Source of the DNA: Tubulanus polymorphus
Taxonomy: Eukaryota; Animalia; Nemertea
NCBI RefSeq assembly: GCF_964204645.1
Contig: NC_134033.1
Span: 5,728,231-5,792,230, forward strand
Length of the DNA stretch: 64,000 nucleotides
Direction: 5' to 3'
This document shows, piece by piece, positions 1,031 through 62,008 of this stretch (the stretch's first letter is position 1; every line of letters begins with the position of its first letter). Position numbers and translations under genes: made by a program. Under the pieces are notes generated by a model. That model saw only the letters and a list, made by a program, of their open reading frames with translations, had not been told where the DNA came from and searched no databases.

Positions 1031-3720
1031 CTACAATATATGGAAATATTTGGGGGAAGGGGACGGGGGGCGTGAGGGCAGCCACATGCTCTTTTCAATC
1101 ACTTCATGGCCAGTGCCCGTACTCAACACAGTTGAAATCATTCATAAATCATATCCTCTCATGAAGGTTTGATTGAATTCAGTACCGGTTAGGACCTGGT
1201 TCACCCAGCCCTTGCAGTGGATGACTTTCTCAACAGTGATCTCCGTCGCTCTAGATCCTAGTGTAACCAACCACCCAGACACAGTGATTTAAAATAAAAG
1301 TATTAAGAAAATGTCGATCGTGCCATGTCTTACTAGACTAGTGTACAACAGACCCTAATAAAAGGTTCTTCATTATTATGAAGGACCTGGTACTGGTATG
1401 CTGGTACTGGTAGTTCTACGAATGAAAAACGCTGTCATTAGGGTAAATGCCCCTGCCCGCTAGATATTGCCTACGTCAGCGTCATAGCAGGGCCACCACA
1501 GAGGGAGCACTGCACAGCAGTGGTCGACGCCAACGACAGTCAGCGCTGACTGTGAGGCCGTAGCGTAGTTATAAAAACGCTCAGGTATCGGCCATTTATT
1601 TGTTATTGAATCAGTTTGTTATGTATTGTATTACCTCTCACAGATAGCCCTCGCTCGGGTACAATCACTTGACGAAGCTGTCACTGCACCTGATGCTAGT
1701 AGAAACCAGTAAAATAACCAACAGTTGCCCATGTTTTCTGCGTAAACAACGACAACGTGGAGAGTTTAAACTACGCGCGCGTGGATCTCATAGATGGCGC
1801 TAGGTGACGGTGCGCATTTGCCGTGACGCGGAACCGGACGCAATGTCGCGGGCTGCCGGCCGGCGTCTCGGCGTCTCGGGTAACGAAACAATCTGAAACA
1901 CCGTTGAAACAACCGATAAAAAGGGTAATTTCTAAAAGAAAGAAACGTCGATTACCTTTCGGATAATCAAAATTGAAGTTGTATCGTAATCAGGAGACAA
2001 CGCGCTACTACCCCCTCTGCGGCCACACCTTTGCGCAACAGCTTGTCATGGTGCACCGCTCACATGGTACCCGCGTCCAACACCACGGGTCGACTAGGTT
2101 CAATTCCCAGAAATATCTTATGATATGATATGATATGATTTATTTGCATAAAAGATTGTTACAGAGTTTACAAATGAATACACAATATATGGAAAACAAT
2201 GTACCAATAAATTATGCGAGGAATTAGGAGAAGCCAACGTTGGCTTAATCTAGTCCTAATCCCTCGTCCATACACTCTCACATACACACAGACATATACA
2301 CCAATTCACATTCATTCCTAGTTTACCAAACAAACCAAATATACATAATATACATAGACAATTGCAGATAAAGTAATGTGGCACGTTATAAAAGATTACA
2401 CAGATAATTAATAAGTGGAACGAAGATAACGCTGAAGCTGAATTTTGAAGTTGGATATCGAGTCTAGATATTTTAATTTCTCTGGTAAACTATTCCAGAA
2501 TTTCGCTCCTTGAATTTTCATAGATGTATACTTGTATTTAGATTTAGCAAATTCTATTGATGAGGCCATAGGTCTGCGACTAGAACGAAGATTTTGGGTG
2601 TTCCTGAGAATGAAAAAATCTTTGAAAATAGTCGGTAATAAAAGGTTGATACTTAAGAAGGCAAGCGATCCAATTTGAAGTCTGTAAATGTCATCCAGTT
2701 TAAGAATTTCTAATTTCCTGAAAATCGGGGATGTATGTTCAAGCCAATCTGAACGAGTGATTATCCGAAGGGCTTTTTTCTGAAGGATGTATAATGGTTG
2801 CAAATAAATTTTACAGGCATTTCCCCAAATAAGATTGGCATAATGTAGGTGTGAGTGAACGAAACAATAGTAGAGATTTTTTAGAATCTGAAGGTAAAAT
2901 GTACTTTAATCTATTGATTATACCAATTCCACGAGATACTTTTTTACACGCAAAAGATATATGCTCCTTCCAGGTTAAATTGTGATCAAATATAACACCT
3001 AGAAACTTTGTAGAATCAGGGAAGTGTGATGAGATGGAATACGGACGCTTTTAATTGCCGGATGTAGGCTATTCAATTCAGCCCGTACATCAAAGGTTAC
3101 CGCAACAGCAGTAAGCTACGCTTATCGAGTGTGTGTTACCAGCTGAACACCAGTCAACATCAACTTTGATTTGGTCGCAGAACAACCCGCAATAGTTTTA
3201 GCCCGATAAATGTTCTGCGATCGATACTACGCATGCGCACTGCAGTTCATTGAACAACGTGGAAGTAGCTGTGTATACACATATTTTTCTTTAGAAAATC
3301 GGTTGAAATTCAACAATTTCTCGTAAAATTTGTCAAAAAAGGTATGTATTTTTATTCTTCTATATCTCCGAAACCCGGTATCGGAACGTTAAGTATTTAT
3401 ATTGTGATTAAAGTCTGTTTTTATGTGTTAAACATATGTTTTTGCCAGTTCGTTCCGATTCCGGGTTTAGCGTTATTTGGGCCTTGAAGATGTCAAATAT
3501 TTCGGCCCAGACTCGCGCAGCTTTCGTTTCTGACGTCATGTTGCTATGTTACGACACAAACATATACACGAAGTATGATCTTTAAAATGTGTATTTACTA
3601 CATAATAATGTTACTTAATAACGCTTACATTAGGCCTACAAATTATTGTCCCCCATATAAACCAAGTTGCCTAAATAGCATCAGCAATCTCATTTAATTA
3701 ACCTTTTTTTGTTTTTAGTC

Positions 3721-4053
3721 ATGGATCTTTGTCGATTGTGTGGAAAAAATGCGAAACCTCCGGATCGTCGTCCTATCGATAAAAATAATTTCAAAAGCCA
3801 TGTGAAGGAGTTGTTCAACATTGATTTTGATGATGATACTGAACAGTACCCGATATACATCTGTAATATCTGTCGTGTCAAATTACAAAAATGGCGTAAG
3901 AACAAAAACGTTAAAAAAACTGTCCCTGTGACTATCAAATTAAAACAATGGACATGTAAACCACTGGTTAATTCCAAGTCTGGACGGCGACGTATTTGTA
4001 GTCAAAATTTTATCGATCGATTTTCCATAATGTACTGCTGCCATTCCATTTGA
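3721..4053 (+). pseudogene. Truncated transposon gene with a C4 zinc domain resembling the RAG1 N-terminal / Chapaev / zf-AD type
   Basis: MDLCRLCG...VKELFNIDFDDDTEQYPIYICNICR...W. The ATG at 3721 follows a splice acceptor (3718), with an upstream donor AG|GTATGT at 3341/3342. Confidence 0.6.
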
Positions 4054-4089
4054 ACTGAATTTAAATACTCGATGGTTAATCACTTCAGT

Positions 4090-4553
4090 CATAGCCTTTT
4101 CCAAATATATAGTGTTCCTGCGAAAATAATAATAATGATTATTATTTTAACATGTACTTATCTGGATTTTTTATATTATGTTTATATATTATTTTCTGTA
4201 TTCGTTTATTATTTTATAACCTAAAAGGATTGTATTGATTATAAAAATAAATTTTAAAAAATACCTGTATGTGTTTTCTCGTGTTCAGATCGCAGTCTCT
4301 GGTCAGCTGAGCCTGAGAAGTACCTATATGAAAAAGAAAAGGAAAGAATAAAGTGCCTGCAATTAGGTGGAAACTATTCCGATATTTCATCGATTCAAAA
4401 GGAATAACACTCACTAGAATCGGCCGAATTAGTTGATCCTGATCCAGAGGATTCCCGTAATATTTCCGTATCGATCTGAACCAATTCGTCACTATCAAAG
4501 AATAGTTCGTCAAAATCGTCATCATTTATAATTTCGTTGACAACCGTTGCCAT
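4090..4553 (-). pseudogene. Remnant of a second, convergent spliced gene inside the transposon (acidic N-terminus)
   Basis: AAAATGG start at 4553 gives MATVVNEIINDDDFDELFFDSDELVQIDTEILRESSGSGSTNSADS, then donor GTGAGT (4414), exon 4323-4265 and an acceptor at 4118. The frame is not maintained into exon 3. Confidence 0.45.
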
Positions 4554-7495
4554 TTTAATACAGCGGAAAGAACCGATATCACGATTGATAAAACACTATA
4601 TCCGTCTGAAGCGATGTAGAGAGAATCGCACAATGATAACGAAAAAGTCCAAAAATGTTAGTAGTTTATTCGACGTTTCGTCTATGTCCTAATAATCATC
4701 TTCAGAAATAATGAATACTACAGAAATTATGAGATATATATACAATCCAGAGAGTAAGAGACTAATTCAAGTAATCAGAGATGATACAAACTAAAGGAAA
4801 ATTAACGTAGAAACAGTTACACGCTAAAACAGATTAAAGAGAAGCAGTTAAGAGACAAACTAGGGGGCACTTAAATTTAAGACAATTGTGAATACAAGTT
4901 GATCGACTGAAATTGATGAGGGGAAATCAGGTGTTGAGTTTAACCAGTTTACAGAGGAATTTTTAAATAAGTTTATTATGGGATGAAAAACCGATATTCG
5001 GAAACAACTGAATTATTACGGGAGATTCCCGATCTCGTTGGTTATCGCTCATCGGCGCGTTACGTAACAAAGCGCTCGCCGACGAACCGTTATCGGCTTT
5101 AGGGCAATTACAACGCACATTCGACAAGAGCTGCACAATAGCGTCCGTATTCCATCTCATCACACTTCCCTGGTAGAATCAACACGTTTGATAATTTGGT
5201 CATCCAGACGAATGGTGAGTTTAATATGGTCTTTATTACCAAAAATGATATACTGGGTTTTTCCTACATTTACAGACAATCTATTAGCCCGAAACCATTG
5301 CAAGAGATTAGCCAACTCTGAATTCAAGGTGTATTCGACAAATTTTGGATCATGATGGCTGTAAAAAAAGTTGCTATCATCAGCAAAAAGAATTGACTCT
5401 AATGCTTTACAAGAGGAAGGGCAGTCGTTGATATAAATCAAAAATAATAGCGGCCCTATGATAGAGCCTTGAGGGACACCAGAATTAATGTCGAGAGTTG
5501 AGGATAAACAGTTATTGAACTTCACTGCTTGTTTTCTATTAGTTAGATAATTTTGGAACCAGAGATATGGTATGCCACGTATACCGTAATGTTCTAATTT
5601 TGAATTTAGGATTTTGTGATTAATTGTGTCAAATGCTTTTGATAAGACTATGAAAACACCAGCGGTTATTAAACCATTATCTAGAGAGTTTGCTATTTTA
5701 TCAGTAATGTACGTTAATGCAGAGGGAGTTGAGTACTTTTTTCTAAAACCAAACTGCCGGTCATTTAAGATTTCATATTTGTCAAGAAATTTTATCAACC
5801 GATTGTAAACAAGTTTTTCCAACACCTTTGAAATTGAAGGTAGAACAGAAATAGGGCGATAGTTACTAAAAGAAGACTTATCACCCATTTTGTAAATAGG
5901 GGTTATGTAAGCGATTTTGAAAATATTGGGAACTATACCTGTGACAAAGCTACAATTAAAGTTATGAGTTAAGGGACTTGAAATAGCGGAAATAATAGAT
6001 TTGAGTAATTTATTGCTGATATTGTCACATCCACACGATGGTTTACTTTGTAAGTTAGATACAATTTCCTCGACTTCTGAGGGGTATGTAGGTGAGAGAA
6101 AAAAGGTTTCGTCGTTTTTATCGCCAAGATATTGTTTAAAATCGTGAGTGGAATTTGGAATTTTAGACTCAAGAGATGAAGCAATATTTACAAAATAATC
6201 ATTGAACTGGTTTGCAATTTCTAGTTCATCAGTAATAACCCTGTTGTTGTGTAAAAACTCGGAATTACACTTCTTATTTTTGGTCTTATTAAGTAATGAA
6301 TTGATTATTTTTTACAAGTTTCCTTAGGATCATATTGACACGATAAAAATTTTTCTTTGTAATAACGTTCTTAACTTTTTCTAAGTAAAGAGTTTAAGAA
6401 ATTCCTATATTTATAATACTTGGCTTTGCTGTCAATACTTCTTTTACCTATATATTTTCTATATAATTTATCCTTAATTTTGATAGACGTTTTGATCCCT
6501 GCTGTAATCCATGGTTTATTGTGTTGTTTGGGTGTAATACACTTAACCGGAAAACATGCTTCATAACACGTATTTACAATATTATAGAATTCGTTACAAG
6601 ACTTTCCTGGACTATTGCTATTATAAACACACTGCCAATCGCTGGCTAACAATGATCGGGAAAATGTTTCGATTGACCTTGGATTAATATCACGGATCTG
6701 AATTATAGGGGAATTGGGATTATATTTCTCATTTAAAATATCCATCACAGCAAAAATCGGGTAATGATCTGTGATATCGTTAAGGAAGACTCCACTTAAA
6801 ATTTTAGACTCTTGGCTAAAATTAATTAATATATTATCTATTACCGTAGCAGATTGCTCAGTAACTCTAGTGGGTAAATTAATAAGCGGTGAAAATGAAT
6901 TAGAGCTCGCAATATTTATGAAACTCTCATACAAAGAATTTTTTCCAATTTTGCTAAAGTCAATATTATAGTCACCCATTAATATAACATTTAAATTTTC
7001 CTTGTTAACCATATGTGTAAATCTATTGAATTCATTAATAAAGTTTGTTAAATCAGATTCAGGCGCACGATACAAAACACCAACGATAATCTTTTTTTTT
7101 GAATAAGATAATTCAGCAAATATAGATTCACCAATAACTAAATCCTCCCAAATTTTATATCGAAAAGTATTATTTATTAAGATACCTACACCACCACCCT
7201 TTTTATTCGATCTACTCCGAAAAAAAACTAGTATAGTTAGGGATGTGATACAAGGATTCATTTGGGATATTCTCGATGTCCATGTTTCGGATAATCCAAT
7301 TACAGAGAATTGATGGTTCAGAGTTTGAAGGTAATCACTGAAGTTATCGAAGTTCTTCTTGACACTTCGGACGTTAGCATGAAATACACTCAACGGTTTT
7401 CCCTCACAAGGTGTTGAAAATTTTAAAGCGAAATTGTTCGCACAATAATGGTCACAATTAGTACATTCCGGTTCTAATATATATTCCGACATTGT

Positions 7496-10197: not shown

Positions 10198-13100
10198 TTA
10201 TTTCTTATAGTAGCCTCTTCCTCGACTTCTTCCACTCCTACCAATATATGAATTCGTGCTACCGTAGCGGTCGTTTTCGTGCTCGCTGCTGTATCCGTAA
10301 TAATCCATGTCCTCGTACGCTGAAATAGATCGTTCATTCGATTATGTAAATCTAATATGCAAATCAGTTGCCGAATATATGAAACTTCTAACGAACAAGA
10401 CTCGAAACTAGAACAAAACATGCTTTCGAAGCCTTATTCTCATTAAGGATATAGTAATAATAATAATGATAATAATGATGATAATAATGATATCAATTCT
10501 AATAATGATTATTTTTATATAACATCATTCTCATTTTAGACTCGTATCACTTTACATAAATAAGACAAGATATGAAATAAGATTATAATATAAAACGATC
10601 AGAGCCAATTACAGCATATCAAATATAATCTTCATTAAAAAAGTGAGTTTTTTAGCCTCTTCCTAAAAATTGAATATGGTTGTAAGTAAGAGTTCTCCAA
10701 AAAATCAAATGCTTAACTCAATAGTAGCTGATAATAATGGAATTTTTTAGGTACTAATATATTTTGGACTAATACTAATATATTAAGTATTTTTCATAGT
10801 GGAATTATTTTGGATGAAAAATGTTTTTTTTTTGTGACGAAATTATTTTTTTGTTCGTCAAGAAATATTTTCATTTCCTGTATCGGCCACCGTTCTGGAC
10901 AGAAAAAAAAGGTACTCACGTCTGTAATGTTCGGGCGTGTAATGTCGACAAGTAGGGAATCTAGGTGGAATATCGAACGAGTCGAATTTCTCGAAGCCCT
11001 CGATCAGAGCGACGAACATTCCAAACATCAGATGCGGTTCGATGTGACAGTGCAGTCCCCAAGCGCCCGGATTATCAGCCTTGAAACGGATGACGACGTA
11101 ACCACCGGCCGGTACGAGGACGGTATCCTGAAATATAAAACTACATTAAGAAACAATATTGAGAGGTTATTCGACATATAACAAGGACTCTTTTGAAAAA
11201 AAAGGATGCCCAATCGGGTACCCGCAGTGCTACTATGGCAATCGAGTATTCCACGTATGGTAGGCGAGAATTCACCAGATGGCGCTAACAGATTATAGGT
11301 CGTCTGCGTTCGCTTTTTCTACGTTTCAATCAATTGTAAATGAACTTTTCTCTTTGAACAGACAATTAATTCATGAAAACTAGACCGATATCCAAATTGA
11401 AGAATGGAAGTATTGGTGCTCTAATAATGTATGGATTCTGGAGTTCAAAGTTCATTGAAAATGAGTTAATTTTGACAACGGTCGACCTATTGCTCGCCAC
11501 GCCATCTAGTGGGATATCCGGTTTTGCGGGTTCCCCATTTTTCTACACAGTTCGAGAAATAAGTTGATAATTCATTCATCAAAACAAAAACAAAACCTGT
11601 TTATTACTTCACGATCAATGATTCACCTTTAATGGTGGATCAAACAGATTCAAACCGGGGATGTTGTTGCCACCCCAAGTCGAATTTCTCCATCTCGCTC
11701 GATTACACCATATCGGGTCGTCGCAGATGAGATCTTCATTCTGGCCAATAATCGCCCCAGACGAATTCATTTGAGGCAACCCGATCTTCACGACGTAAAA
11801 ATGATGTCCGTGCATATGTATAGGATGATTGCTACGCCCGATGCCCAGACTCAGTATGACGAACTGTTGGATCTCTCCTAGTTTCATGTGGTGGTTGTAG
11901 GTACACTCGCACGTGTTGTTCGTCTGGCACGGCTCATAGCACGGGTTTTCCTGGGCTTCGCCCGGTTGCGTAAGAATCGGCGACACCGGCACCTGATAAC
12001 GAACACCGTTTACGCGCGGACCCCGCTTGAAGCCGAAATTGAATAAGCTTTCTCTGATTCGATGTCCTCGGTAACGTCGGCTACCCCCGGGACGTCCGGG
12101 GACCCGTTGTTTGTATTTCGACCTCATACGATCGAATGTAATGCATTCTTGGTTTGGTCGAGCGAAGTCGAAAGCGTCGCAGTTGTAGACGATGCACGTT
12201 GTTTCGTTTTGTGCACATCGATGAGTGGTAGAATTAGGATCGATGCCAGAAGTCGCTCCTCGGTATCGTAGGATAGCCAGTCCGCGACTCGCCCGTATCC
12301 AATAGGTATCGACTGGCTGGTCGGCCACGACTAGTACATCGTACCTCTCACCAGGTGTCACTTGCACGTGAGTTACCCACTGAGGTTTCAGGTCGCGGCC
12401 GTCTGTCGCTATCACCTGCATTCGGTGGCCGTCGATCGAGAACGTCACGAAAGTCGTCGCTTGCGAGCCGATTATACGGAATCTGTACACTTTACCTGGG
12501 ACGACCTCGAACTCCGTCAGCGGACTCTCCGTCAGGAAGGTGCCGTCGGGAGCCTGGTAGCGACCCCTACCGTTGACCACGAGAGAATGGTAGCGTTGAT
12601 CTAACGAGGAATCGTTATATTTGGCAGCTAGGCTACTCCAGATGTTGTTGGTCAGATACAAATACCACGCGTTACCTATGACTTCATGGTTTATGTCACC
12701 GAACATCACGTTGAAATCTCCGGATACAAGTGGCTGTTCGGCTTTCTTGGGATGGATGATAAAAGCCCCGTAAAGAGAATCGGAAAGCTGTATGCCGACG
12801 TGCGAGTGATACCAGAACGAACCGTACGGGTAGGCCTTGAAACGTTGCGTGAAGATCTCACCAGGCAGTTGGGGACACTGAGTCAACCACGGGATACCGT
12901 CGTACCATCCCGAATTCCTCTGATGCAACCCGTGCCAATGAACGGATATCGCTTCGGAGATATCCTTGTTGTGTACGTTGATGATTATTTCTTGGTTCTC
13001 CCACGCCACGATATCTGGTCCGGGAACCGTCCCGTTGAACGTCAACATCCGGATGGGTCTCATGAAGCCGTCCGAAACGACCACGTTCGCCGGATCGATT

Positions 13101-13528
13101 GCTGATACGTTCGGATTAGTAGGATCGTCGTTCCAATTGTAGAGTCTGCCCTGATAAGTAAACAGCAGGGTTCGTCGATAAACCATCGTCAGCGTTTCAA
13201 CTACTTCGAGCGTAAATACGCATTGCTTATCCGTCCGTCTGCATGGTCTCGCGTGAATAGGCTCTGTAATTGATTAAGACAAACTTACTATTCGTTGAAT
13301 CGGCCCTAAATCGCTCTTTTTCCCGACAACTTCGACGACCTGGCGAAGAGCTTCAATTTCTCATTCCAGAGTAAGATGAAATTGAATGACTGTTTGTGAT
13401 TAGGTAGAATACAAAATTGTATATGTTTTACCGTATACGTCATCTGCATACATCGTAGGAGGCCCCCTTGCGGCGACAGCGAGCACTAAAGCGCACACGA
13501 TTAAACAGTAGACATACATAGTGTTCAT
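10198..13528 (-). CDS. Secreted laccase-type multicopper oxidase, about 687 aa; coding exons 13528-13432, 13263-11627, 11127-10920, 10319-10198
   Basis: Signal peptide MNTMYVYCLIVCALVLAVAA. All four copper motifs are present: HWHG, WYHSH, HPIHMHGH, HCHIEPHLMFGM. GT-AG introns have consistent phases (2064 nt total). A probable non-coding exon has its donor near 14737. Confidence 0.93.
11200..11540. mobile_element. GAGGAC-family MITE in a laccase intron, with CTCF-like motifs near both ends
   Basis: CACCAGATGGCGCTA at 11273-11287 and CGCCATCTAGTGGG at 11500-11513, plus internal blocks shared with the other copies. Confidence 0.65.
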
Positions 13529-16550: not shown

Positions 16551-16789
16551 TTCACAACCTGTCCCAGTAGACCAACGTTACATCATATATTCTTTGAAAA
16601 TTCATTGTTTCTTGTATTGAAAAATCAGTGATTTAAACACGTACAACCTGAGTTAAAAATTGAAGGTCGTTTTATTTGACGATCTAAAAAAGAAAAGGCG
16701 TGTACGTTTTGTGGAATCTATATAGCTTTCGATATAGTTTCAATAATTAGTGTGCTTTGATTGAGAGTGAAGTCTGATTGGTCGACGCA

Positions 16790-17797
16790 ATGGCTGCAAC
16801 GTCTACTCCCCGGAACGGCTCGAATATTACAAACATCTTCACGAGCCTCGTACTGGCGGCTACTACGATAAACGGAACCTATCTCTGGTGTTACCTCGTA
16901 TTCGCTAGTCTCTGCTTGATGCTCGGATTTGTCGGCAATCTCCTGATCGTGATGGTAATGCGCAAGCGCAAGCTGTGGGGACGTTCATTCAGTCGCATGT
17001 TCGTTCAGCTAGCCGTCTGCGACACATTGGTTCTAATCAGTTATTCGATGAAATATATCAACGTTATATCTTACGCATTTGGCAGCAGGAAATTACTGGT
17101 TAAACCGTCAACACGAATTCAATGTATATGTTTCGAATACTTGCTGACGCTGGGCTTTGCGAGCAGCCCGTGGACGCTGGTCCTCGTAGCCGTCGAGCGA
17201 ATGTGCGTTGTTTGTTTTCCGTTTAGGGGTCCCCGTTTCTGGAGCCCGAATACAGCGTCGAAACTCTGTTTTTCCGTCATCTGCGTCGTTGCGCTGATTT
17301 ATAGCTATCTATTCTTAACTATCGACGTCATCGACAACCGGGGTTGCGTTTATAAAAATGTGCCTCAATTCACCAAGCCTTTGCTAACGTCGATTTTCAT
17401 CTCGATAGGCCCGTTCATTTCGTTAGCGATTACGTCCGCGATAACGTCGATCACTTTGTTGAGAAAAAAAGGCAAATCGGTAACGACCCGAGCGTCGAAA
17501 TACTCAAACCAGGTAACCGTTTTGGTTCTGTTACTGTGCGCCTTTTTCATGACCACGACGTTCCCCGCCACTTTACTCGGCCCGTTCGTCCGGACGAACC
17601 CTGAACTTAAAATCGTTTTCGCGGTCTTAGTCGATATCTTAATGGTAAACTATTCGTTTACCCTGTACTTGTACCTGATGACGGGAAAAGAAATCAGAAA
17701 CGAATTGCGCAGTCTGATCTCAGAAACCGTAGCCCAAATCTTGAACTTTGTCATTTGTGTAGTATCTAAAATTACTCGATTACCATCGCAGAAATGA
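16790..17797 (+). CDS. Intronless rhodopsin-class (class A) orphan GPCR, peptide-receptor-like, about 335 aa
   Basis: Seven hydrophobic segments; GFVGN (TM1), LAVCD (TM2), VAVERM (DRY equivalent), TTFP (TM6), NYSFTLYLY (TM7); N-terminal N-glycosylation sequons. Confidence 0.9.
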   Translation: MAATSTPRNGSNITNIFTSLVLAATTINGTYLWCYLVFASLCLMLGFVGNLLIVMVMRKRKLWGRSFSRMFVQLAVCDTLVLISYSMKYINVISYAFGSRKLLVKPSTRIQCICFEYLLTLGFASSPWTLVLVAVERMCVVCFPFRGPRFWSPNTASKLCFSVICVVALIYSYLFLTIDVIDNRGCVYKNVPQFTKPLLTSIFISIGPFISLAITSAITSITLLRKKGKSVTTRASKYSNQVTVLVLLLCAFFMTTTFPATLLGPFVRTNPELKIVFAVLVDILMVNYSFTLYLYLMTGKEIRNELRSLISETVAQILNFVICVVSKITRLPSQK

Positions 17798-49093: not shown

Positions 49094-49828
49094 ATGGATA
49101 TGACCAAAGAAGAGTTCATTTATTTCTCGCGACGAGCGTCGGACAACCCGAATTCTGACGAGGGCATCTGCCTGTACAACTTCCTGGTTCGCTGTTTCAC
49201 CGACGCCGATATCGACTTCTCGGGCGCCGTGACCTTCGACGAATTCGACAAGATGATCGAGAACGCCGCCGCGTTGCCGAGAAAATACGGCTTCGCCCCG
49301 AAAACCGAGGTCATGTTCAAAAACAACGACGAATGCAAAAAGTCGCGCAAAACCCTGTTCGACTCGATCGACTCGAAGAAGAGCGGACGTATTTCGTTGG
49401 AAGCGTGGATCGCGTACGCGCAATCGCACATTTTCAAGAAAGTGCACGAGTTGAAGCCGCACATCTTGCAAGACGGCCCGAAAGACGAGTTCATCGCCTT
49501 CACGAAAAAGGCCGTCGTCAAAGGCAGCACCGAATTCAAAGAACTGTATTTCTACTTGTTGAAAGTGTTCCAGGACGCCGACACCAACCACGACGGCGGA
49601 GTCAGTCCCGAAGAGTTCGACCAGATGATCGAGTCGGCCGCCGCCATGCCCAGACGCTACGGCCTGGCCCCGAAAACGTCCGACCTCTACAAGACCGACG
49701 CCGCGCGCATCGAAGGCCGCAAAAAATTATTCGCAGATATTGACACTAACAACGACGGCAGTATCTCGTTCGACGAGTGGCTGAACTACGCCGTCAAGCA
49801 CATCACGGGAAAAGTCGCCAGTCTTTAA
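49094..49828 (+). CDS. EF-hand calcium-binding protein, 244 aa, two tandem ~120-aa modules with two EF-hands each
   Basis: Loops DIDFSGAVTFDE, DSKKSGRISLEA (degenerate), DTNHDGGVSPEE, DTNNDGSISFDE. Strong C/G-ending codon bias; AAGATGG start 14 nt after a splice acceptor. Confidence 0.92.
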   Translation: MDMTKEEFIYFSRRASDNPNSDEGICLYNFLVRCFTDADIDFSGAVTFDEFDKMIENAAALPRKYGFAPKTEVMFKNNDECKKSRKTLFDSIDSKKSGRISLEAWIAYAQSHIFKKVHELKPHILQDGPKDEFIAFTKKAVVKGSTEFKELYFYLLKVFQDADTNHDGGVSPEEFDQMIESAAAMPRRYGLAPKTSDLYKTDAARIEGRKKLFADIDTNNDGSISFDEWLNYAVKHITGKVASL

Positions 49829-50829
49829 ACAAAAAAATGCGACGAACGAAAAATCTCAAGACCAACGAAAATTTCAATCATTTTTCCCCGCGAGACCGTA
49901 TACGTACCTTTTGTGACCCGTCCATCCCTGATATGCTCGTTCCGCAATCTCCTTCGAGAATGATAATGACTGCCTGATTTTTTCCATCAAAAAAGGATTG
50001 AACGTTCCTTAGTAGAATCAAACTCGCCAAATCAAATACCGACAATATTCGGTGTAATTATCGCATCACCATTAGAAAGATTTGAAAAAACAAAGTTGTC
50101 TGCGACGGCCTGCGTAAAGGCATCAATATTTGGCAACTCGCCAATAAACGAAACTTGACCCTACGAACTTACAAAAACGTAAATATGCTACAAAAGTACA
50201 AACGGTAGTTCGAGTGAGATACATACTTTTTTGTGTTGAGATATTTCTATCGGAGAAATCGATATGAAACACGAGTATACGTTTGTAAAAAAATTAATTT
50301 CAAAGATGATAAATTATTATAACGTCAATGAAAAAAATACCTTTGATAATTTAAAACTATGCTCGTTTCGTTATCTTTGTTGGTTTTTCGTTTTCTCTTC
50401 TGGAAAAACGCGTTTGGAACTGGGGGGCCGGTTCGATGGTCAAGGTTTAGACTGTCTATCAAAAACAATCAGTGGCTAATTTAGATATGTTGCTATTGCG
50501 ATAACCTAAAACACTTAAAGTATATAACCGCAATAAAAATTAACAAATTTAACTAAAGCTAGAAAAGAATCTTGGGGCCGGTCTTATGGATTGGTATTAA
50601 CTTTAAACCCGGGGGCTAACTCTAATCATCTTTAATTAAGTGAACCCCTAGGTTAAAGAAACGTAAACGTAATGCCTGTCTATAAAACAGGGCCAAGATG
50701 TTCCGACTTGATTTCATGAGCCATTTTCAAAATCGAGTCGAACCGTCATACATTCTCTCCTAGTTTATTTCATTGTATTGTGGGTGTTTACTATTGATAT
50801 CAGACAGTCGCTCGCCTATGGAAACCGAT

Positions 50830-51350
50830 TTGAAACGTGTCCAAGCTCGTTTTGGTTCTTTAGCATATTTAACATCTTAAAGTTAATACCAGTCCATAAG
50901 ACCGGCCCCAAGATTCTTTTCTAGCTTTAGTTAAATTTGTTAATTTTTATTGCGGTTATTTACTTTAAGTGTTTTAGGTTATCGCAATAGCAACATATCT
51001 AAATTGGCCACAGATTGCTAAGCTCATTTGGTTCTTTAAAACCAGTCTAACATCTTATAAAACCGGTCGTAACTCATTTTAGCTCTTAAACCAATGTAAT
51101 TAGTTTCTAATGTAATTAGTTTCAACGTGTCTAAACTCATTTTGGTTCTTTAGTTATCTAACATCCTGAGACCAGTCTAAACTCATTTTGGTTCTCCAAT
51201 CCAACAGCTTGAGACCAGTCTACACTCATTTTGGTTCTATAACCAATCTGACAACTAAAAACGTGTCTAAACTCATTTTGGTTCGTTAGTTACTGTTACA
51301 TCTTGAGAACAGTCTAAACTCATTTTAGTTCTATAACCAATCTGGAGACC
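50830..51350 (+). repeat. 47-bp minisatellite array interrupted by a 141-bp inverted copy of nearby DNA
   Basis: ctaaactcattttggttct units; 50877-51017 is the reverse complement of 50466-50606. Confidence 0.85.
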
Positions 51351-53514
51351 GTTCGGTTTTAATCGCTCAACGACCTTTATACTGCTAAAAGTTCAGACCA
51401 TTTTCAGTCTTGGTACTGTATATTATTGCGAAAAACCCACGATATCGAATTAAACCCAGGTGGATGGAATCCACCCGAATCGTCAGCAAACAAAACAATA
51501 ACATTTGTTATAATCGATATTGTGAGTTCCACTCAATGATACCTTTAAACTGTATGAGAAAAGCTCATTACAAATTAAGCGGCTTTGAGGAGTCGAACGC
51601 ATTGGGTATACGAACCAAGATCCGCGAATACGTAGGAATCGGAACAGCGTCGTAGCTGGTGAATGATAAAACCCCGATGCAAACGGCGCAGGGGAACGTG
51701 AAAACACTGAAACAAGGAAACAAACAAGTTCGATTTCGGAAACATCGCTTCACGGGACCACATTTTCTGGTAAACCTACTCGACAACGGGGAGCGTGTTT
51801 TCGTCGTCTGGTTCCGTGTTCCCTGCGTTGTGCGCGCTGAAAAACAAAAGTTGACGCTGAAACCAGTGCGTTACTTACCCGAACGAGCGCCAACCCGTAA
51901 TATATAGAACACTCCACGAATCAAAATCGAGATCCGAAACCGATGACGTTTCTCTTTTCGATTTTAGTATTATAGATTCCGTTTTTTTTTTCTTTCAAAT
52001 AGGCCGAAGATACGCTAATCCAACACGCCCAGTAGACGTTGTCGGTGTAGGTCGACCATTTTACATTTAACCCGAGTTGACGCTAACATTGACTGATTGC
52101 AGTCGATGCTACCATGGTCATCCTATTTGTACCAGTAGGCCAACATGGACTACATGCGTAATGACCCCATCGTCAATTGGTAAATAAATTGGCTGTGTAG
52201 GACCTCTATTTAATTACTCAGCATTCCTGTCAACAATATATAGGTCTACTAAACATCAGTATAAGATCAAGTACTATTCACACGTACGCCGACACTGATA
52301 ATGGTGCTTAAATTCCTTAATTACTTAAATTCCATATAAATGCGCCAAATTAAGAAGTTATTATTGTACGAATCTAGAAAGTCATAACGGATGGGACATA
52401 TTACGCGGGTAACCGAATCGCAGCTCTCCTTTCAGGACGGAGCTCTCCATTCAGGACGGGTCGATACGTATGTCGTCGCAGGGAAATCGGCTTTAAGATG
52501 GGTCGATTATGATATGACGTCACTGGGGGATACCACCACGAGCTCTCGTTTCTGGACGGATCGAGAGCGGATAGACGGTCGATTATATGACGTCGTAGGG
52601 AGATACCAAGAAGAAGTTAATCCTATCAGGACGCTGGGGTCTATGTGACGAAGAAGGAGGTCCATTTCTTTATGAAGGGCTTATTGAGATCTTAACTAGT
52701 GACGTCATAGGGGATTTCATGAAAGCTTCTCATCTTCTATTGAATAGTGACGTCATAAGGAGATTTCAAGGGGAATAGTCGCTGGCAGCTGAAACGTCAT
52801 TGATGACGTGACAAAGGGGATCTTGAGAAGTATCTAAGCGTGTCCATGGCATAAGAGTTGTCGTCAAAAACGATTTAGAAATTCATTCGATTCATTTCGT
52901 ATTGTCTTTTATTGCTTAAAAATGTACAAAAGGTCAGTTGAAATATTGAATAGCCTACATATTATCTAAGTTACTACATGATGGCGTATTTTCCAACGCA
53001 TAAACACAGATAGACAAACATGTATTTGTTAAGAAGCGCGCATCGCCGGTACTGGTTATACGCCCAATTTTGATTGAAAATGACAAATAATGGGAAAACC
53101 ACAAAACAATAATTAAGAATATGTATATCCGGGTTATGACTATTGCGTAAGAGGTACATTTGAACTAAAGTTCGCGTTCCAAGCGCTAGTTGCAAACAAA
53201 CGGGCGTTTTATTTGAAACTGCATCTACGGCGGTTCATGCAGTCCAAGCACAAATAGACCGCGTAAATGACCAACTATATTTCATTAACTCTTACTTTGT
53301 ATTTGACATCAGTTCGGGGTTTACCATACCAAACTTAACCGCAGTAAGAGACAGAGTCCTACTCCGTATTTGACCCAAATGACGAATCCTACCAGCATTA
53401 AGAGACAGAGTCTACTGCATTTTACAAATTCTTACTCAGTTTTCGGCACCAACTCGGGGGAAAATTTAACCGGTCTCAACTCGACCGCAGTAAGAGACAG
53501 AGTCTGCTGTAATA

Positions 53515-55264
53515 AAGAAGTTTCCAGTTTCTAGGCGCCATTTTGTGGCGGTCCCGCAAGGTCCCCATTGTTGCGATAATTTGCGCTCATTTTTAAAACA
53601 TAAGTTTAGATTGAATATCATATAGTTCTGTAGTCCCTTGCTCGACGAAATCAATTTACACACCATTTTAAAGGAAATGAAATGCAGATATTTGCTGGCG
53701 ATTCTTGGAATTTTTGAACGCAACAATTGAGAACAGTGACGATGTGAAACCAAGGACCGCATATATAGACCGTGCGTAAAAGAAATCGCAATATTTATTA
53801 ATTTTAAAATATCTAAGTATCTCTTCAAGCTATATTTCCTATTTTCACAGAGGTTAAAGAGGGTTATTTGCAGTTTAAGCCTGCGTTAAAATCTTTTGAA
53901 TATCTTACCTGACGACTGATCTGTACCCGCTTGAGTTTGAGATTACGCGCAAAAGGGGTCTCCCACTGCGCATTGCAATTTCACTGAACATTGAGATTTG
54001 CGACAAGAAATTTTTAAATGCAATTTGATTTCTTCACATTTTCCATGGGGATATTTTGAGATGATAATCCATATCTTCTTTGTACCGTATTTTGGCGGGG
54101 CAATTCGTTAATCTGGTTTCGGGATCCGGTTTGTCCCGCTATTGAAGTGTGAACGGCCCAGTTGAAGAATTGTCGTATACAGCCCGTCCAGCCTAGCGCC
54201 GATTTTGTGTTCGGTGAAATCAAACGTTTTAGAGTCGATGGTGAAATGTGCCAGTCAATTTAAACGCTTAGGACATATTTAACACATATCTCTCTCTGGT
54301 AATCCCTCATTCTTCGATCATACGATGAATTTAATGAATCTCAACCTTCTTGCTGGGAAACATCGACCAGAAAACCTTACTGATATAAAATTGCAATATA
54401 TTATTTAAAGGGGTTCATATCTGTCCCCCATTTGATATTCTGTTTTAGGGGGTCAACGTCCAGTTTGGCAACTTTCAGCTGCGCCCCATATTCAAAAATA
54501 TATAAAAACTTAGATTTTTTTTCTAGTGTCCAACCATGAGTGGTACAATCGGTTGAAACGCAAATTAGGTTCTCAACTAGGCCACATTTGCAACCAACAC
54601 AGAAAGTCCCCACTCTTACAAGAAATCCTTTAATTTCCCAACGCTACAAAACTCGAATTCATCAAAACACTCAAAGTCCATTTTCAACCATACGAAAATA
54701 AAGGTAATATATAACCATCAGAAGCAATAGTGATAATTACAAACCAGTTTAAAATCTTATTTTTGTGATTTCTTTTCACAAATCTCAATGTTCAGTGAAA
54801 TGGCGGTGCGCAGTGGGAGACCCCTTTTGCGCGTAATCTGAAACTCATGCGGGTACAGATCAGTCGTCAGGAAAGATATTTAAAAAAATTCAACGCAGGC
54901 TTAAACTGCAAATAACCCTCTTTAACCTCTGTGAAAATAGGAAATATAGCTTTAAGACATACTTAGATATTTTAAAATTAATAAATATTGCGATTTCTTT
55001 TACGCACGGTTAAAATATGCGGTCCTTGGTTTCACATCGTCACTGTTCTCAATTGTTGCGTTCAAAAATTCCAAGAATCGCCAGCAAATATCTGCATTTC
55101 ATTTCCTTTAAAATGGTGTATAAATTGATTTCGTCGAGCAAGGGACTGCAGAACTATATGATATTCAATCTAAACTTATGTTTTAAAATTGAGCGCAAAT
55201 TATCGCAACAATAGGGACCTCGAGGGACCGCCACAAAATGGCGCCTAGAAACTGGAAACTTCTT
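53515..55264. mobile_element. Foldback-type non-autonomous DNA transposon, ~490-bp TIRs, probable TA TSD, inserted in a 92-bp satellite array
   Basis: Arms at about 53515-54000 and 54780-55264 are near-identical reverse complements (AAGAAGTTTCCAGTTTCTAGGCGCCATTTTG...). TA at 53513-53514 and 55265-55266. Satellite continues on both sides (53290-53510, 55270-55350). Confidence 0.9.
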
Positions 55265-55593
55265 TATTTTGTCACCAATTCGGGGAAGAATTTTTACCCG
55301 TCACAACTAAGCTGCAGTAAGTTACAGAGTCTACTGTATTTCACAAACCCAAATTGCGTATTGTATCTAACCGTCCAATATGGCGTAGTCACGTGATGAA
55401 AGCGCATAGCTTCACGATTTCTATAGCAAGTACAATGTACGTAATGCTACAACTTAGTTCCTTAAGCGAGTTACATGTCATATACATAGCCAACCAAGAT
55501 AATCGGAGCCTCTCTGAACATTGTACCCCACGCGCAATGGAATAAGGCGTAAGTCACGAGGGCCTTCAGTCGCATGGTTGCGCTGACGGCCCC

Positions 55594-58500
55594 TCAGAAC
55601 CGCGTACCCCACGGTATCGAGGACAGACGCAAGTCATAAGAGCCCTCGGCCGCGGCCGCGCACACATCCCGCGGCGTGTTGAAATTCGCCACGCGCACCT
55701 GTCTTTGCACGTGTTTGCGACGCGTGACGTAATGCTCGAACGCCAGACGGTTCCACGGTTCGATCAGTTTGTCGTAAGCCCCGGTTGAACCGGTCAACAG
55801 TTTCGCGAACACGTAACCGCGCTGAATCGCCTCGTAAATCGGCGTCTGTTCGTTGGTGACGTTGTGGATGTAGACGCCTCTGTCGCGGTCGATAAAGCCG
55901 CTGACCAACGCGTCCCGGAACGGTATCCGGCGTCGTAAAAACGGGTCCATTACGCCGATACACAAATACACCTCGACTGCGGTGGATTCCTCCACTTGCG
56001 GGTGACTCATATCGAAAACTTCGTCCTCGAATTCGATGTCTATGTAACCGTGTTCGATCGCCTCGTCGACGGTAATTTTTCGGTGGTTGCGTTTGTCGAA
56101 ATAGACGTCTTCTTTCTCGTCGATCAAACCTTGCATTTTGGCCACGTCGAAACTGCGACTGCGGCCGCCGATCGTATCGAACACGCCCTTGATCGTACAC
56201 GGCATGTACCGCGTGATCGTATGGAATGTAATCAGCCCGTACGAGCTGCCGATCTTAGTCGACTTCGACTTCGTGTCTTGCAAAATGAACCGCTTCGTAA
56301 TCGCCTCGGCGATCGACATCGTGAACTCGGTCAGCGGGTTTACGTAGGTACCGTTCACTAAATCGATAATACCCTTGGCGACGGCTTGTTCCAGCGTGAT
56401 GACCTTACTCCACGGATCGATAACGCCGACGACCTTGTACACTTCGTACAGATCTTTGATCGAATACATGGCCGTTTCCGACGAGCTCGACGACAAACTC
56501 GAACCGGACACCGTCAGACTTTTGATCGCTTCCCGACGCGTGCGAAACGTCGAACTGATACTGGTCAAGCGGTCTTTCATATCTTCGCTTCGCGCGGACA
56601 GGTCGGTCTGCGTGCGCGAGTTCTGCAGACGTTGAACGACGCTCCATTCCTCGTAAAAACCGGACTCCGACGAAAACATGCTTTCCATGTCGGGTAACGA
56701 TCTGAACCGGTGACTGTGAACCAACGACGCGTCGATCGTCTGCGGGTTGACGTCGTCGTTCGGCTGCTGCCCGGGAACCGATAATCGAGACGACTTGCCG
56801 GTGGTCTTATGCGGCGCCCGCGGAGGCCGCCTCGACGGCTGTTTGTCGCTATCGCCGTCCGTCGCCTCGATATCTATATCGACGATCGTGAATTTCGACA
56901 CGCTGCGTTGTTTTCTCTTAGTTAGTTTTTTCGCCGCCGTGGCGCTGTCGTCGTCGTAATCCGACTGAGTGTAATCGATGTCTACGTCGGCCCGAGTCGT
57001 GTCGATGTAAGACGCCTCGTACTCGCTCTCGTAGCCGCGTTCTGTGACTATCTTCCTCAACATCCCGCTATCTACGTTACCGTCGCTAGGTGGCGCAACA
57101 GATATTTTACCATGATTAGGTGGCAACACTGATGCATTATAATCTTTAGGTGGTGTTACAGATTCATTTTCATCACCAGGTGGTGCCACCGATACATTAC
57201 TATTGCTAGGTGGCAGCACTGATGCACGTCCATCCCAACCTTCTCTCTGCTGTATGGACGTTTTCGTCGTCGTCGTTGTCGTAGTAACTTTTTGGTGAGA
57301 TTGTTGATTTTCTAATTTGAACAAAAATGGTTGCGGAGCAGGATTCGACACGACGTCCATTTTGCCATACAGATCGATAGTCTCTCTTTTCCTGTTCGTG
57401 GTCGAGTCTCGGTGATCAACCTTTTTCGGTCGATTTTCTTTCTTGGTAGTGGTTGGTTTTTTCGGAACCACGGGCGGAGGCTCTTTTGGGTCCGCGGGCG
57501 TTGGTTCTGCTAATTTAGGCGGTTCTTGCAGAACTTTCGGCGATGGTGGTTTTGGTTCTACGGGCTTTGGTTTTTGAACGAATCTAGGTGGTTCTTGAAT
57601 TATCATAGGATGTGGTTCTTTGACTACCAAAGGAGGTGGTTGCACTAATTTGGGAGGTTCTCTGAGAACCTTGGGTGACGGAGGTTTGGGCGCCACGAGT
57701 GGTTTTTCAATCAATTTCGGTGGTTCTTGTAGAACCGTGAGTGTCGGCACTTTCGGTGGCGCTACGGGAGGTTTATGAACTAGTTTTGGTGATTCTTGGA
57801 GAACCGTGGGCGTTAGTTCTTTCGGTAGTAATGGTTTTGGTTCCTCTGGTGGGTATGAAATACTCGCGTCCGCAATCTTTATGAACTCGGGACCTTTCTG
57901 CGGCGTTGAAATAACTGGTTGCATTTTTCTAGGCGGCACGGGAGGTGGCTCCGTCGTCACGGGAGTATTCGGCGGTGTTTTAGGCAGAGGTCTTCTCGGT
58001 ACTAGCGGCGGTGCGTCTTCCGGCAACGAAATAGACATTACTTTTCCAGTTTCCGGTGGTTTCATTTCTAATTTTGGCAATGGCTCTCGCGGTTTAGTTT
58101 GTTCCGGGGATTTCGTTGGTCGCGCTTTCGTTTTACTCGAAGGAGTGAGCAATTTACTATCGCCGAATTTGGAACTTCTCTGCGTAGGCGGGTGTCTGTT
58201 TTGCGTCTGTTTCGGGCGCTTCCTCGTCGGACCGCTGACCGACTTTTCCCCCGGTTGCAATTCCGCCTCGTCAACGCCGTCCATATAGGGGATATTGCCT
58301 TTTTCTGGCGCGGTCAACCTACTTGGTTCGACCTCAGGGGGCTTTGTTTGCATCGACATCGAAGGAGGTTTTGGGCTTTTGTCGTCGACGAATTCGATAC
58401 CGCCATAAAATGAAACTTTCTTATCACGCTTCCCACCGACGGTGCCCGTTTCTACGGGTACCTTGAACGTCGAGTCGGGTGGTGGGTTTAAAGGCTCGAA

Positions 58501-61500
58501 TAGGGGTTCTCTGAATATGCACGGCAGCGCCCAAGGATCCTCAGCCGTGGTAGGGGTGATTTGAAGGTCGGGACTCTCGGAATCATCAATAAACGGAATT
58601 TTACGCCAATCTACATCTAGCACCGACACTTCGGGCTCGTACGGCGGTGTACACTCGGGGTTGTAAGCGTAGTACAACTCCCAGGTTTCCGGAACTCTCG
58701 GTTCCTCGGCGTCGTGGTCTAGGTACAAGTTAACATTCTCCTCTCGCGGTGGACCCTCTTCCAAACCGAACGTGACGCTGACGCCGTCGTTGAACGATTC
58801 CACGTGCAAATGAAGCGGGTACTTCGCTGGGTAGAGCACGGTCAGATCGGGGCCTTTAGTTTGGACCGGGCCGATCATGTACACGCCGTGCTTCTTCATC
58901 TCTTCCGATAAAGTATTCTCGTCCAGTTTTCTATTCGGCTTGGTGATCTTAACGTCTTCGCCGTTCTCGCCGTAGCCGTTTTCAGTTCGCTGTTCGTTAT
59001 GCCGGCGTTTACCGGGCGTTCCTTTGCGGGTAAGTCCCGAACCGGAGCCACCCGATTCGCCGTCCCGCTTGCACGTCCTCAAACGGCCTTGTTTTAGGTC
59101 TAACCAAACGCCTTCCGGGTTAGCGATGCACTCACTCGACAAGGTATCTTCGTCGATCCAACAAGAAACTTCATCCATGTTGTTTGTCAAGTCTGCCTCT
59201 TCATGACGATCGTCATAACCAAAGCATATTTGATGATTATCCCGAAGTTCGTAGCAAATATCCTCGAATTCCAGTAATGGATTTGCGCAGTCCCAGAAGC
59301 TTTGGACGCATCTTTGCTCCGATTCTATCCGCAAGTCCTTGAATATATCGTCCTCTGACAACTGCCATATATCGTCGTTAGATTCAACGTTCACGATTGG
59401 AGCGACCTCTAACGGTTTGATAGCACTCAATTGTGGTAGCATATCGTCGTCGTCGAGATCGTCGACATCGTTATCAAAACCTTCCGCGTCCGTGTCGCAG
59501 TCCGCGAACGGTACGTTATCAAAAGTGAGCGCAGATTTCGATTCGTAAGAGACAGTAAGTTCGCCGATATCTGCGGCAGTCGGAGGTACCCATAAATACA
59601 AGTATTTATCGTCAGGCGTGACCTCGTCATCGCAGACGATGGTATTGACTTCGTATGGTGTGACGTAATCATTGCAGACGGTGGCATCGATCACGTCTGG
59701 TATGACGTCATCATTGCAGACGATCTTTTTTATATCCCCGTGTTCAGTTCTTGCCACTAGCGTGCAGACTGTTACAGCCGATTCCTCCGATTCGGTATCG
59801 CTATAACTCCGCTGTCTATCTAAACACATGCCGATCGTATCATCACGATGTTTGTAAACATCCGCGAAGCGGCACGTGTCGTTTTCGACGTCTAAACTAT
59901 CATTGTCGACGATTGCGCCATCTTTCGCACCGGAGAGCTCGATATCGTTTGCGTCGAACTCGACGAGTTCTTCGAACATAGAATAGTTGATATTATCCAG
60001 AGCATCGCTCGTCGATAGGTCCGAAAACGTATCGGTATGTTTCAGGGGCAGGTAGGACTCATCACCGCGGTCGTCGCACGAATACGCGCTCACTACGTCA
60101 TCGCTATCCGTGCTCGACTCCTCGACCAACGTCTCGTCGCAGTCGCTCCAAGTTTTGTCCGAATCTTCGCAATCGGAATTCGGATCCGATCCGAGCGTTT
60201 CGTCCAGATCTTCGTCCATACTTTTAGTAATGATCATCTCGTTGGTGCGGAAAATATCTTCGAATTCGATATCCGAAACGCGAACGGGACTGTATGCGCC
60301 CGCCTCGCTTCCCGCAGTGGCTTTCTCAGGCATTTCGACTATCTGTTCGTCGATGCTGGAATCGGGCTGGAGGCGAGCTGGCCCATTGTACGTAAACAAA
60401 GATCCAGTACTGGCCCGACGCTTAGGAGATATGGCACTGTCTGAATACTTTTCAAACATGGCCACTCGGGTTCGAACGATGTTTTGATCAATCGGTGCAT
60501 CCGTATCTTCATCAAAATCTGTATGGTCGGCATTCGGTTCCGATGACGACTTCGAATCATTCTTCCATTCCGTATCTTCCAAGTGTTCGCGTATCATACC
60601 CTTAACAACGGCCAGCAACGCTTCCACGAGAATGCTTTCATCTTCGCCGATTACCGGGTTATTCGCAGCGAAGTCCTCTCTAACTAATTCGCTCATTCTA
60701 AGGCCCTGCTCGCCTTTGTAAACCTCAGTTTCAGCCTTTCTCGTCGACAAGTACGTATCCAATCTTTCCGAAAATGCACAGTCTATTCCACCGCTGAAAA
60801 AGGCTTTCCGCCCGTTTTCGACGTGTTCGTGCGCGTCGAAAAATTTCTGGAATAAACTAGCGACGTTTTCTTCCACTGAACACTCTTCGAACAGGGCCAT
60901 GATTTTCGCTTCTGTTTCGACGTCGTAGTTAGTGCAGCGGCAAACCTTCTCGACCGAGCCGGCTAGTGACTCAACGATCTCACGCAAGCGAACGACGTTA
61001 GTTTTGACGTCGAAGTTGAGTACGCTTTCATATCTGATATCTTTCGGCAAATCGCTGCTGGTCGATGATGGCTTTCCGGTTAGTCGCGCGACGGACGCGT
61101 CTGTTAGCGCGACCTTTTGACAGACGATCGCCTTATCGATACAAACGCCAGAATCGTCCGAAAGCTCGGCCTCTTCTTGCAAATGACCCCTCCAGAAATC
61201 GAACACGCGCCTGGTGACGTCACTACTCGATCGCTGCCCGGCGTGGGACGTGTCCTCGTTCTGGTCGCTTACGTCATTTCTGTTTGGCTCCTCGGTTTCG
61301 CTGTCAGAATTGTCGGTTTCAGGTTTTCCTTTATTCTCGAATCTGGCGACCAAATCCGACACTCGGCGCCGACTAGTGTAGACGGCTTCCTCGACCGAAC
61401 TCGTCAAATCGGACCAATTCGATTCTACCCGCCGCACCACGTCGGCGACTCTACTCTTCAGCGTTAACCCTTTTGCCCCGGTTCCCGCTCGCTCTTCGGC

Positions 61501-62008
61501 GACGTCGTCCCGGTGATGCGTACCCGGATCGCCGTACTCCGGTCCGAGCACGACCCATTCTTCGTCGTGCGTATCTTGGAACAGGACGTCTCCGTTGATA
61601 GCGGCGCCGTTTTGGTTATTGTTGTTGTTATCGTCGCTCGAAGTTATCAGGAATATCTCGTCCAACGTGAAGTCGTTGTCGACGTCTTCATCCGAATCGG
61701 GCTGTTGAGCGACCGCCGAACCGTCCGCGCAATAAATCTCTTCCGTATCGAAATCTAGCGAGCTCCGTGCGCCATCTACATTCGAAATCGAAATATTTCT
61801 ATTCGTCGGCGATTGGCAACTAGCGTACGATTTGTCGGTATCGAAACACGGTTCGCTGCAGATCGACGGAGTTCGTTTCGTATTACAATTATCGTAACGG
61901 TGCCAATATTGATCTCCGTTGCGCCCTCTATCGATGTCATCCACGTACTTGTATTCTCCGGAAGTAACGTATTGCAGTTGTTTGTGATATTCATCTTCGG
62001 ACGGAAAA
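55594..62008 (-). CDS. Giant (6.4 kb) coding exon of a plakin/plectin-repeat protein; the 5' exons were not identified and probably lie outside the window
   Basis: Open frame of more than 2100 aa starting at acceptor TTTACAG (62009). Acidic disordered region, then a Pro/Lys/Glu-rich tract, then PLEC-like repeats (GVIDPWSKVITLEQAVAKGIID, YVNPLTEFTMSIAEAITKRFI, ITVDEAIEHGYI, IPFRDALVSGFID, PIYEAIQRGYV). Confidence 0.85.

Follow-up and report, generated by a model that had tools for sequence, protein, structure and literature searches.

The P-type element and its parent copies

The window analysed here, 64,000 nucleotides of contig NC_134033.1 from the nemertean Tubulanus polymorphus, contains at 3017-5172 a 2,156-bp non-autonomous DNA transposon with 33-bp terminal inverted repeats (TIRs) and a 7-bp target site duplication (TSD). 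It is probably a young copy, made non-autonomous by deletion, of a bipartite cut-and-paste transposon of the P superfamily, in which the transposase begins with a zinc domain of the RAG1 N-terminal zinc domain (NZD)/Chapa type and the P C-terminal domain (CTD) is carried by a separate, convergent gene. The left TIR, with its CA... end, occupies 3017-3049 on the + strand and the right TIR 5140-5172 on the - strand. Direct comparison of both ends confirmed the prediction of perfect 33-bp repeats, with 35 of 36 positions matching when one mismatch is allowed. The TSD copies (GTAGAAT) lie at 3010-3016 and 5173-5179. The element interrupts the reverse transcriptase frame of a host long interspersed nuclear element (LINE) on the - strand (2400-7492, outer limits approximate), whose reverse transcriptase and endonuclease were identified by matches to RVT_1 (E 2.6e-30) and Exo_endo_phos. 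When the element and one TSD copy were excised in silico, the frame was intact again.

With the 33-bp TIR as query, the 268-Mb genome gave 58 matches per strand and the control none, which corresponds to about 55 copies. Among the 38 copies read with both ends, the TSD was 7 bp long in 35, 8 bp in one and absent in two. The original prediction had drawn a parallel to the GTA-starting 7-bp TSDs of Galileo. A GTA start did not hold as a rule, as only 4 of 35 TSDs start in this way and the target-site consensus is palindromic (TTn-RTnnnAY-nAA), leaving a GTA-type target preference unsupported. The combination of CA...TG TIRs with a 7-8-bp TSD is that of the P superfamily, and such TIRs with 7-bp TSDs also surround both genes in four relatives of the element (L051, L069, L072 and L110). 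Galileo and 1360 share the 7-bp TSD (PMC3698922).

Three parents of 5.5-5.9 kb share these ends, L031 and L032 (5,910 bp each) and L033 (5,511 bp). Relative to the parent, 3,671 bp are missing from the window copy at a junction between 3955 and 3956, comprising the rest of the transposase and most of the last exon of the second gene (ORF2, for open reading frame 2). The junction shows 1-nt microhomology, and the identical joint was present in all four runs (X1-X4). None of these runs is recorded as RNA and their evidence comes from contigs, so that it carries no information on levels or strands. Two convergent genes meeting near 3960-4050 after an internal deletion had been proposed; the deletion was borne out, but its exact position is 3955/3956. 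Given this junction, the + strand ORF in the window represents transposase over residues 1-78 only; beyond this point it consists of antisense read-through. Both ORF remnants are pieces of the parent's own genes, which rules out captured host fragments.

Mean divergence was 1.3% among the 2.15-kb copies, 0.6% for a 2.22-kb sister derivative and 0.26% among the three long copies. These low values show that the family was recently active, as had been supposed from its perfect TIRs. The long copies contain a 144-bp tandem duplication (L032:5963-6106) that is missing from the short derivatives, so that the latter must derive from a sister master with a divergence of about 1.9%. Two 181-bp derivatives the size of miniature inverted-repeat transposable elements (MITEs), L034 and L035 (G000:C5:14489728 and 14525260), retain both TIRs and 7-bp TSDs and resemble inverted duplicates of a single insertion. 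Furthermore, contig depth over L032:5620-6016 (about window 4480-4870) was very high in all four runs, with numerous loose ends near 5749-5809; this region upstream of ORF2 apparently has sequence in common with a far more abundant repeat.

The two convergent genes

The + strand gene has its first intron at 3342-3718 (GT..AG), 5' of the ATG at 3721, as claimed previously, and the intron was spliced in contigs of run X4. In the window copy, coding sequence at 3721-3954 specifies transposase residues 1-78 before the deletion cuts it. The parent gene has five coding exons for about 859 amino acids (aa), and database searches of the parent genes were run exon by exon. Pfam matches to PF21787 (E 2e-26), PF12017, PF21788 and PF21789 together cover a helix-turn-helix (HTH), the N- and C-terminal parts of an RNase H domain and a GTP-binding insertion, and a Protein Data Bank (PDB) search matched the Drosophila P transposase (6p5a_A, E 1.8e-7). 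DDE catalytic motifs were located at about residues 430, 533 and 789. By sequence, the + strand gene is thus a P-superfamily transposase, and these Pfam and PDB matches rule out a hAT, Transib, Chapaev or Kolobok core. With the P superfamily (Drosophila P element, Galileo, 1360 and THAP9), the lineage shares this HTH, RNase H with GTP-binding insertion and DDE architecture as well as CA...TG ends, TIRs of about 30 bp, a spliced gene and internally deleted derivatives. Transposition in this superfamily is a GTP-dependent cut-and-paste reaction with 17-nt staggered ends (PMC7776569).

Two features set the lineage apart from canonical P and THAP9 elements. First, a NZD/Chapa-type finger stands in place of THAP: PF05485 was found neither in the parent transposase nor in 62 homologues, and no THAP motif lies upstream in the six split-type relatives checked. 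Second, the CTD is encoded apart from the transposase by the convergent gene, where it is preceded by an extra N-terminal region that is helical and acidic. The parent transposase chain stops about 70 aa past the catalytic Glu, and 62-71 aa follow this residue in 15 of 16 full-length-type relatives, compared with 220 aa in the Drosophila P transposase (E531 of 751; PMC7776569, PMC3698922). A profile of ORF2 matched none of the 62 related transposases.

ORF2 runs on the - strand from the ATG at 4553. Exon 1 (4415-4553) encodes an acidic N-terminus, exon 2 lies at 4265-4323, and the 5' remnant of the last exon at 3956-4117, its P-CTD-homologous part falling within the deleted stretch. The introns accordingly span 4414-4324 and 4264-4118. 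This layout agrees with the gene that had been predicted with two introns, of which the first was spliced in run X4 and the second was not seen spliced. The window copy itself is frameshifted by a 2-nt deletion, which shortens exon 2 from the 61 nt of most copies to 59 nt, and encodes only 76 aa; the frame is intact in most copies.

The parent ORF2 product comprises 402 aa from three exons. As a single query it found nothing in Pfam, PDB sequences or the ESM Atlas. At E<0.001 its family comprises 5,174 representatives, of which the top 150 range from 193 to 535 aa, and a 134-member profile searched against the PDB placed the C-terminal chain of the P transposase, 6p5a_B, on top (E 0.0047). An AlphaFold model (pLDDT 90) was all-helical. 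Foldseek ranked 6p5a_B first (probability 0.99, TM 0.66 by target, E 0.32), and VIA-align superposed all 118 of 118 residues of 6P5A chain B with Z 12.3 and 2.2 A root-mean-square deviation, the next match reaching 8.2. For a helical protein, a Z of 12 is by itself a modest score. Still, three methods agree on exactly the domain that the partner transposase lacks. Taken together, profile and models identify the second half of ORF2 as the P CTD absent from its partner. The same all-helical model excludes a RAG2-like (kelch) protein.

Given this descent, ORF2 could still have become a regulator or a chromatin-targeting accessory, with the truncated transposase working without it. Many ORF2 relatives combine the acidic start with a PHD or C2H2 finger (the window family has the acidic start only), and ORF2 has about 135 helical residues beyond those that match the Drosophila CTD, as might be expected of such a role. 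In the P strand-transfer complex, however, the CTD lies between RNase H and the GTP-binding domain (GBD), in contact with both donor and target DNA (PMC7776569), and ORF2 has kept the complete CTD fold and a basic tail and accompanies the truncated enzyme across phyla. We therefore regard an accessory function as unlikely and favour ORF2 as a detached part of the transposase.

The gene pair is widely conserved. Downstream of ORF2 lies a convergent P transposase in Mytilus coruscus, Apostichopus japonicus and one ENA contig, and in 22 of the 26 metagenome loci that had at least 1 kb downstream. Starting from the transposases instead, a convergent ORF2 was present in five of six examined, including that of Patiria miniata. 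The same pair occurs at ten more loci of the T. polymorphus genome (coordinates only), seven of which have a match to the NZD profile upstream of the transposase. Contigs of run X4 contained three GT-AG joints, namely the first + strand intron (in a short-derivative allele), transposase intron 3 and ORF2 intron 1, which indicates that both genes have spliced transcripts in one sample. A literature search that did not extend to Repbase found no paper on two-gene P elements.

The N-terminal zinc domain

The original prediction had likened the + strand product to the N-terminal zinc region of RAG1. For the window copy alone this did not hold: its 78 aa, corresponding to the ZFa half of a NZD/Chapa-type domain (Cys4, 7, 48 and 51), scored only with zf-AD (31 bits), and the window family as a whole gave zf-AD scores of 31-32 bits with no match to the RAG1 model PF12560. 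Residues 1-110 alone had no matches in the protein database or the PDB, and a PF12560 scan of the genome returned no match, the control being equally blank.

For the lineage, the likeness to RAG1 stood. The Apostichopus and Mytilus domains exceed the PF12560 cut-off of 23.3 bits (31.8 and 25 bits, respectively), and among ten aligned lineage members, eight matched PF12560 and nine zf-AD. Searching the PDB with a profile of the domain placed the RAG1 NZD entry 21wb_A on top, with E 4.9e-9 for five members and 3.1e-10 for ten, followed by full-length RAG1 residues 100-217; the best ZAD reached 4.9e-4. In the alignment, all eight RAG1 ligands (H102, C110, C113, C175, C178, H206, C210 and C213) fall on conserved columns, and a 17-residue gap coincides with the vertebrate-specific H2 helix, which invertebrate RAG1L and Chapa also lack (bioRxiv 10.64898/2026.01.24.700457). 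The NZD is defined by the motifs H-x3-L-x3-CRxCG, D-x3-IHP-x3-C-x2-C and W/F-x2-H-x-C-x2-C (PMC1131882) and by its eight ligands (bioRxiv 10.64898/2026.01.24.700457). Seven of the ten lineage members contain all three RAG1/Chapa motifs. The window family retains the four ZFa cysteines and the middle motif only; its ZFb site (His, His, Cys, Cys) is missing, with both histidines gone and a remodelled Cys tail, and the window copy ends at residue 78 in any case.

Feature- and structure-based comparisons pointed in both directions. In an ESM Atlas feature ranking of the window family's domain, PF12560-bearing clusters came first (0.92) and zf-AD followed at rank 20 (0.85). A model of the domain matched vertebrate RAG1 models with TM 0.62-0.64 over 86-89 residues, compared with 0.51 over 59 for zf-AD; this AlphaFold2 model contains no zinc and is not fully independent, since relatives served as its alignment. 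Among solved structures, the model retrieved only ZADs, over residues 1-67 with Z 5.4-6.7, and 21WB was not listed. Such ZAD-only matches fit with the already published likeness of ZFa and ZAD.

These results bear on whether the domain is a generic ZAD-like single-zinc finger that resembles RAG1 merely through shared ZFa/ZAD ancestry. The zf-AD-only scores, the loss of both ZFb histidines and the ZADs among solved structures are what this explanation predicts, and the four-Cys ZFa-type core is indeed common to Drosophila ZADs and the domain. Within the same clade, however, relatives retain the His at the N-terminus and the F-x-x-H...C-x2-C motif, and most NZD-clade members have a putative second zinc site, all of which ZADs lack. 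In addition, two relatives score above the PF12560 cut-off and the profile favours RAG1 by six orders of magnitude. A generic ZAD-like finger is therefore very unlikely: this reading holds for the remnant in the window family but not for the lineage. THAP, the other generic finger considered, is absent. On sequence profiles and models, the N-terminal zinc domain of the transposase is a RAG1 NZD/Chapa homologue at the lineage level, of which the window family keeps the ZFa half; for this family, the link to RAG1 comes from its relatives and predicted fold and not from its own sequence score.

In L031 and L033, an ATG in the first exon (L031:759-825, about window 3275-3341) is in frame with exon 2 and would add 23 aa. 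These include a His located 13 residues ahead of the first Cys, which might substitute for the ZFb His that this family lacks; the short derivatives have neither this ATG nor this His. In another family (G000:C5:14182016-14183267), the NZD-coding segment is tandemly duplicated, with two identical matches 850 bp apart.

Possible domain transfer and a split transposase

To place the NZD-bearing elements, we used an unrooted tree of 67 transposase cores (266 columns). Ten NZD-bearing rows and three N-terminally short predictions fell on one side of a branch with support 100/99. Molluscs, echinoderms and cnidarians are represented in this clade, and the NZD is absent from the other split-type relatives in the tree. 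As the tree is unrooted, it does not settle between a gain of the NZD in one clade and losses in the others. Considering that the NZD occurs in one split-P clade, that canonical P elements have THAP, and that the NZD is found across Chapaev subgroups and RAG1L families, a single gain with P as recipient is more parsimonious than P as donor. The opposite direction, in which the two-zinc NZD resided first in the split-P clade and was passed from there to Chapaev and RAG1L, would accord with the span of the clade across cnidarians, molluscs and echinoderms and with its type I ligands and missing vertebrate H2 helix, which resemble the inferred ancestral state. The confinement of the NZD to one clade among the sampled split-P rows, and its breadth in Chapaev and RAG1L, make this quite improbable. 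Our data hence add a third carrier lineage of the NZD; that the N-terminus of RAG1 came from the P lineage is not demonstrated by them.

Set against known systems, the element has a P core and P ends and would work like a P element; it is neither a Chapaev nor a RAGL transposon. Its N-terminal zinc domain, complete in the window family's relatives, is homologous to that of Chapaev and likewise shows type I ligands and lacks the H2 helix. Chapaev has a Transib/CMC-type core, a RING in some groups and a short TSD, whereas the lineage described here has a P-type core, no RING, a 7-bp TSD and a second gene. In ProtoRAG/RAGL, too, the NZD starts the catalytic gene and two facing genes lie within the TIRs, and the partner of the lineage is often acidic and PHD-bearing in relatives. 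Unlike in ProtoRAG/RAGL, the core is not Transib-like, the ends are not of the CAC or recombination signal sequence type, the TSD is 7 and not 5 bp, and the partner is a helical P CTD instead of a kelch protein. The similar layout thus represents convergence, as the second gene is no RAG2 analogue. One relative, L109, combines a NZD-bearing transposase with a PHD exon (L109:8579-8866) upstream of ORF2 inside its TIRs and is the nearest look-alike of the RAG1/RAG2 domain layout, made of P parts. The original proposal of a two-gene lineage joining a RAG1-like N-terminal module to non-Transib ends is supported, with both ends and core being of P type.

In the favoured interpretation, the NZD would have entered one split-P clade through a single domain swap with Chapaev- or RAG-like elements and taken the N-terminal slot of THAP, possibly as a dimerisation or nucleic-acid-binding scaffold. 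The P core would cut and join with a 7-bp stagger. Transposase and ORF2 protein may assemble into one transpososome, with ORF2 acting in trans and docking at the position of the Drosophila CTD, between RNase H and GBD of the other subunit, where it would touch donor and target DNA. Such docking would be eased by the fact that the Drosophila CTD is tethered there only by a disordered linker (PMC7776569). The window copy, encoding neither function, would be mobilised in trans.

Several observations weigh against this interpretation. The domain of the window family by itself matches only zf-AD and, among solved structures, only ZADs, and the tree is unrooted and without rows for THAP-bearing P, Chapaev or RAG1L. 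Moreover, none of the three long assembly copies is undamaged: L031 has a nonsense codon and a frameshift in ORF2, L032 a 1-bp frameshift and L033 two deletions. The L032 frameshift is absent from contigs of runs X1-X3, which suggests that intact copies may exist in other individuals, although contigs can mix copies.

According to Kapitonov and Koonin 2015 (PMC4411706), no further transposable element is known to carry the Chapa domain. A 2026 preprint about the structure of the NZD, which does not mention P elements or THAP, used Chapaev as the sole other lineage retaining the NZD to place its origin (bioRxiv 10.64898/2026.01.24.700457). What appears to be new here, judging from sequence, is RAG1 NZD homology in P elements, restricted to one clade. 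The presence of the domain in a third lineage, whose catalytic core is unrelated, shows it to be a module moving between transposon superfamilies, which weakens the inference of RAG1 ancestry from domain presence alone. In addition, a young P element with the NZD at the THAP position offers a simple system for testing the role of the NZD, and a naturally split P transposase would make the role of the CTD in target capture assayable in trans.

Aplysia N-RAG-TP, described as an element of RAG1-N-terminal-like sequence only (PMC8355894), resembles by that description the 78-aa remnant in the window. In a more far-reaching scenario, to which we give little weight, a widespread, undescribed P group would have an obligate two-protein transposase, its NZD clade would lie on the path of the two-zinc domain to Chapaev and RAG1, as donor or sister of the RAG1L domain, and orphans like N-RAG-TP would have arisen from it by deletion.

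Elsewhere in the window, neighbouring host ORFs encode a laccase-like multicopper oxidase (11615-13186, -), a seven-transmembrane G-protein-coupled receptor (16778-17797, +), an EF-hand protein (49094-49828, +) and a 2,116-aa plectin-repeat exon (55594-61944, -). Two long inverted-repeat pairs, 53511-54011 with 54768-55268 (501 bp, 95%) and 50466-50606 with 50877-51017 (141 bp, 97%), are probably foldback or MITE elements.

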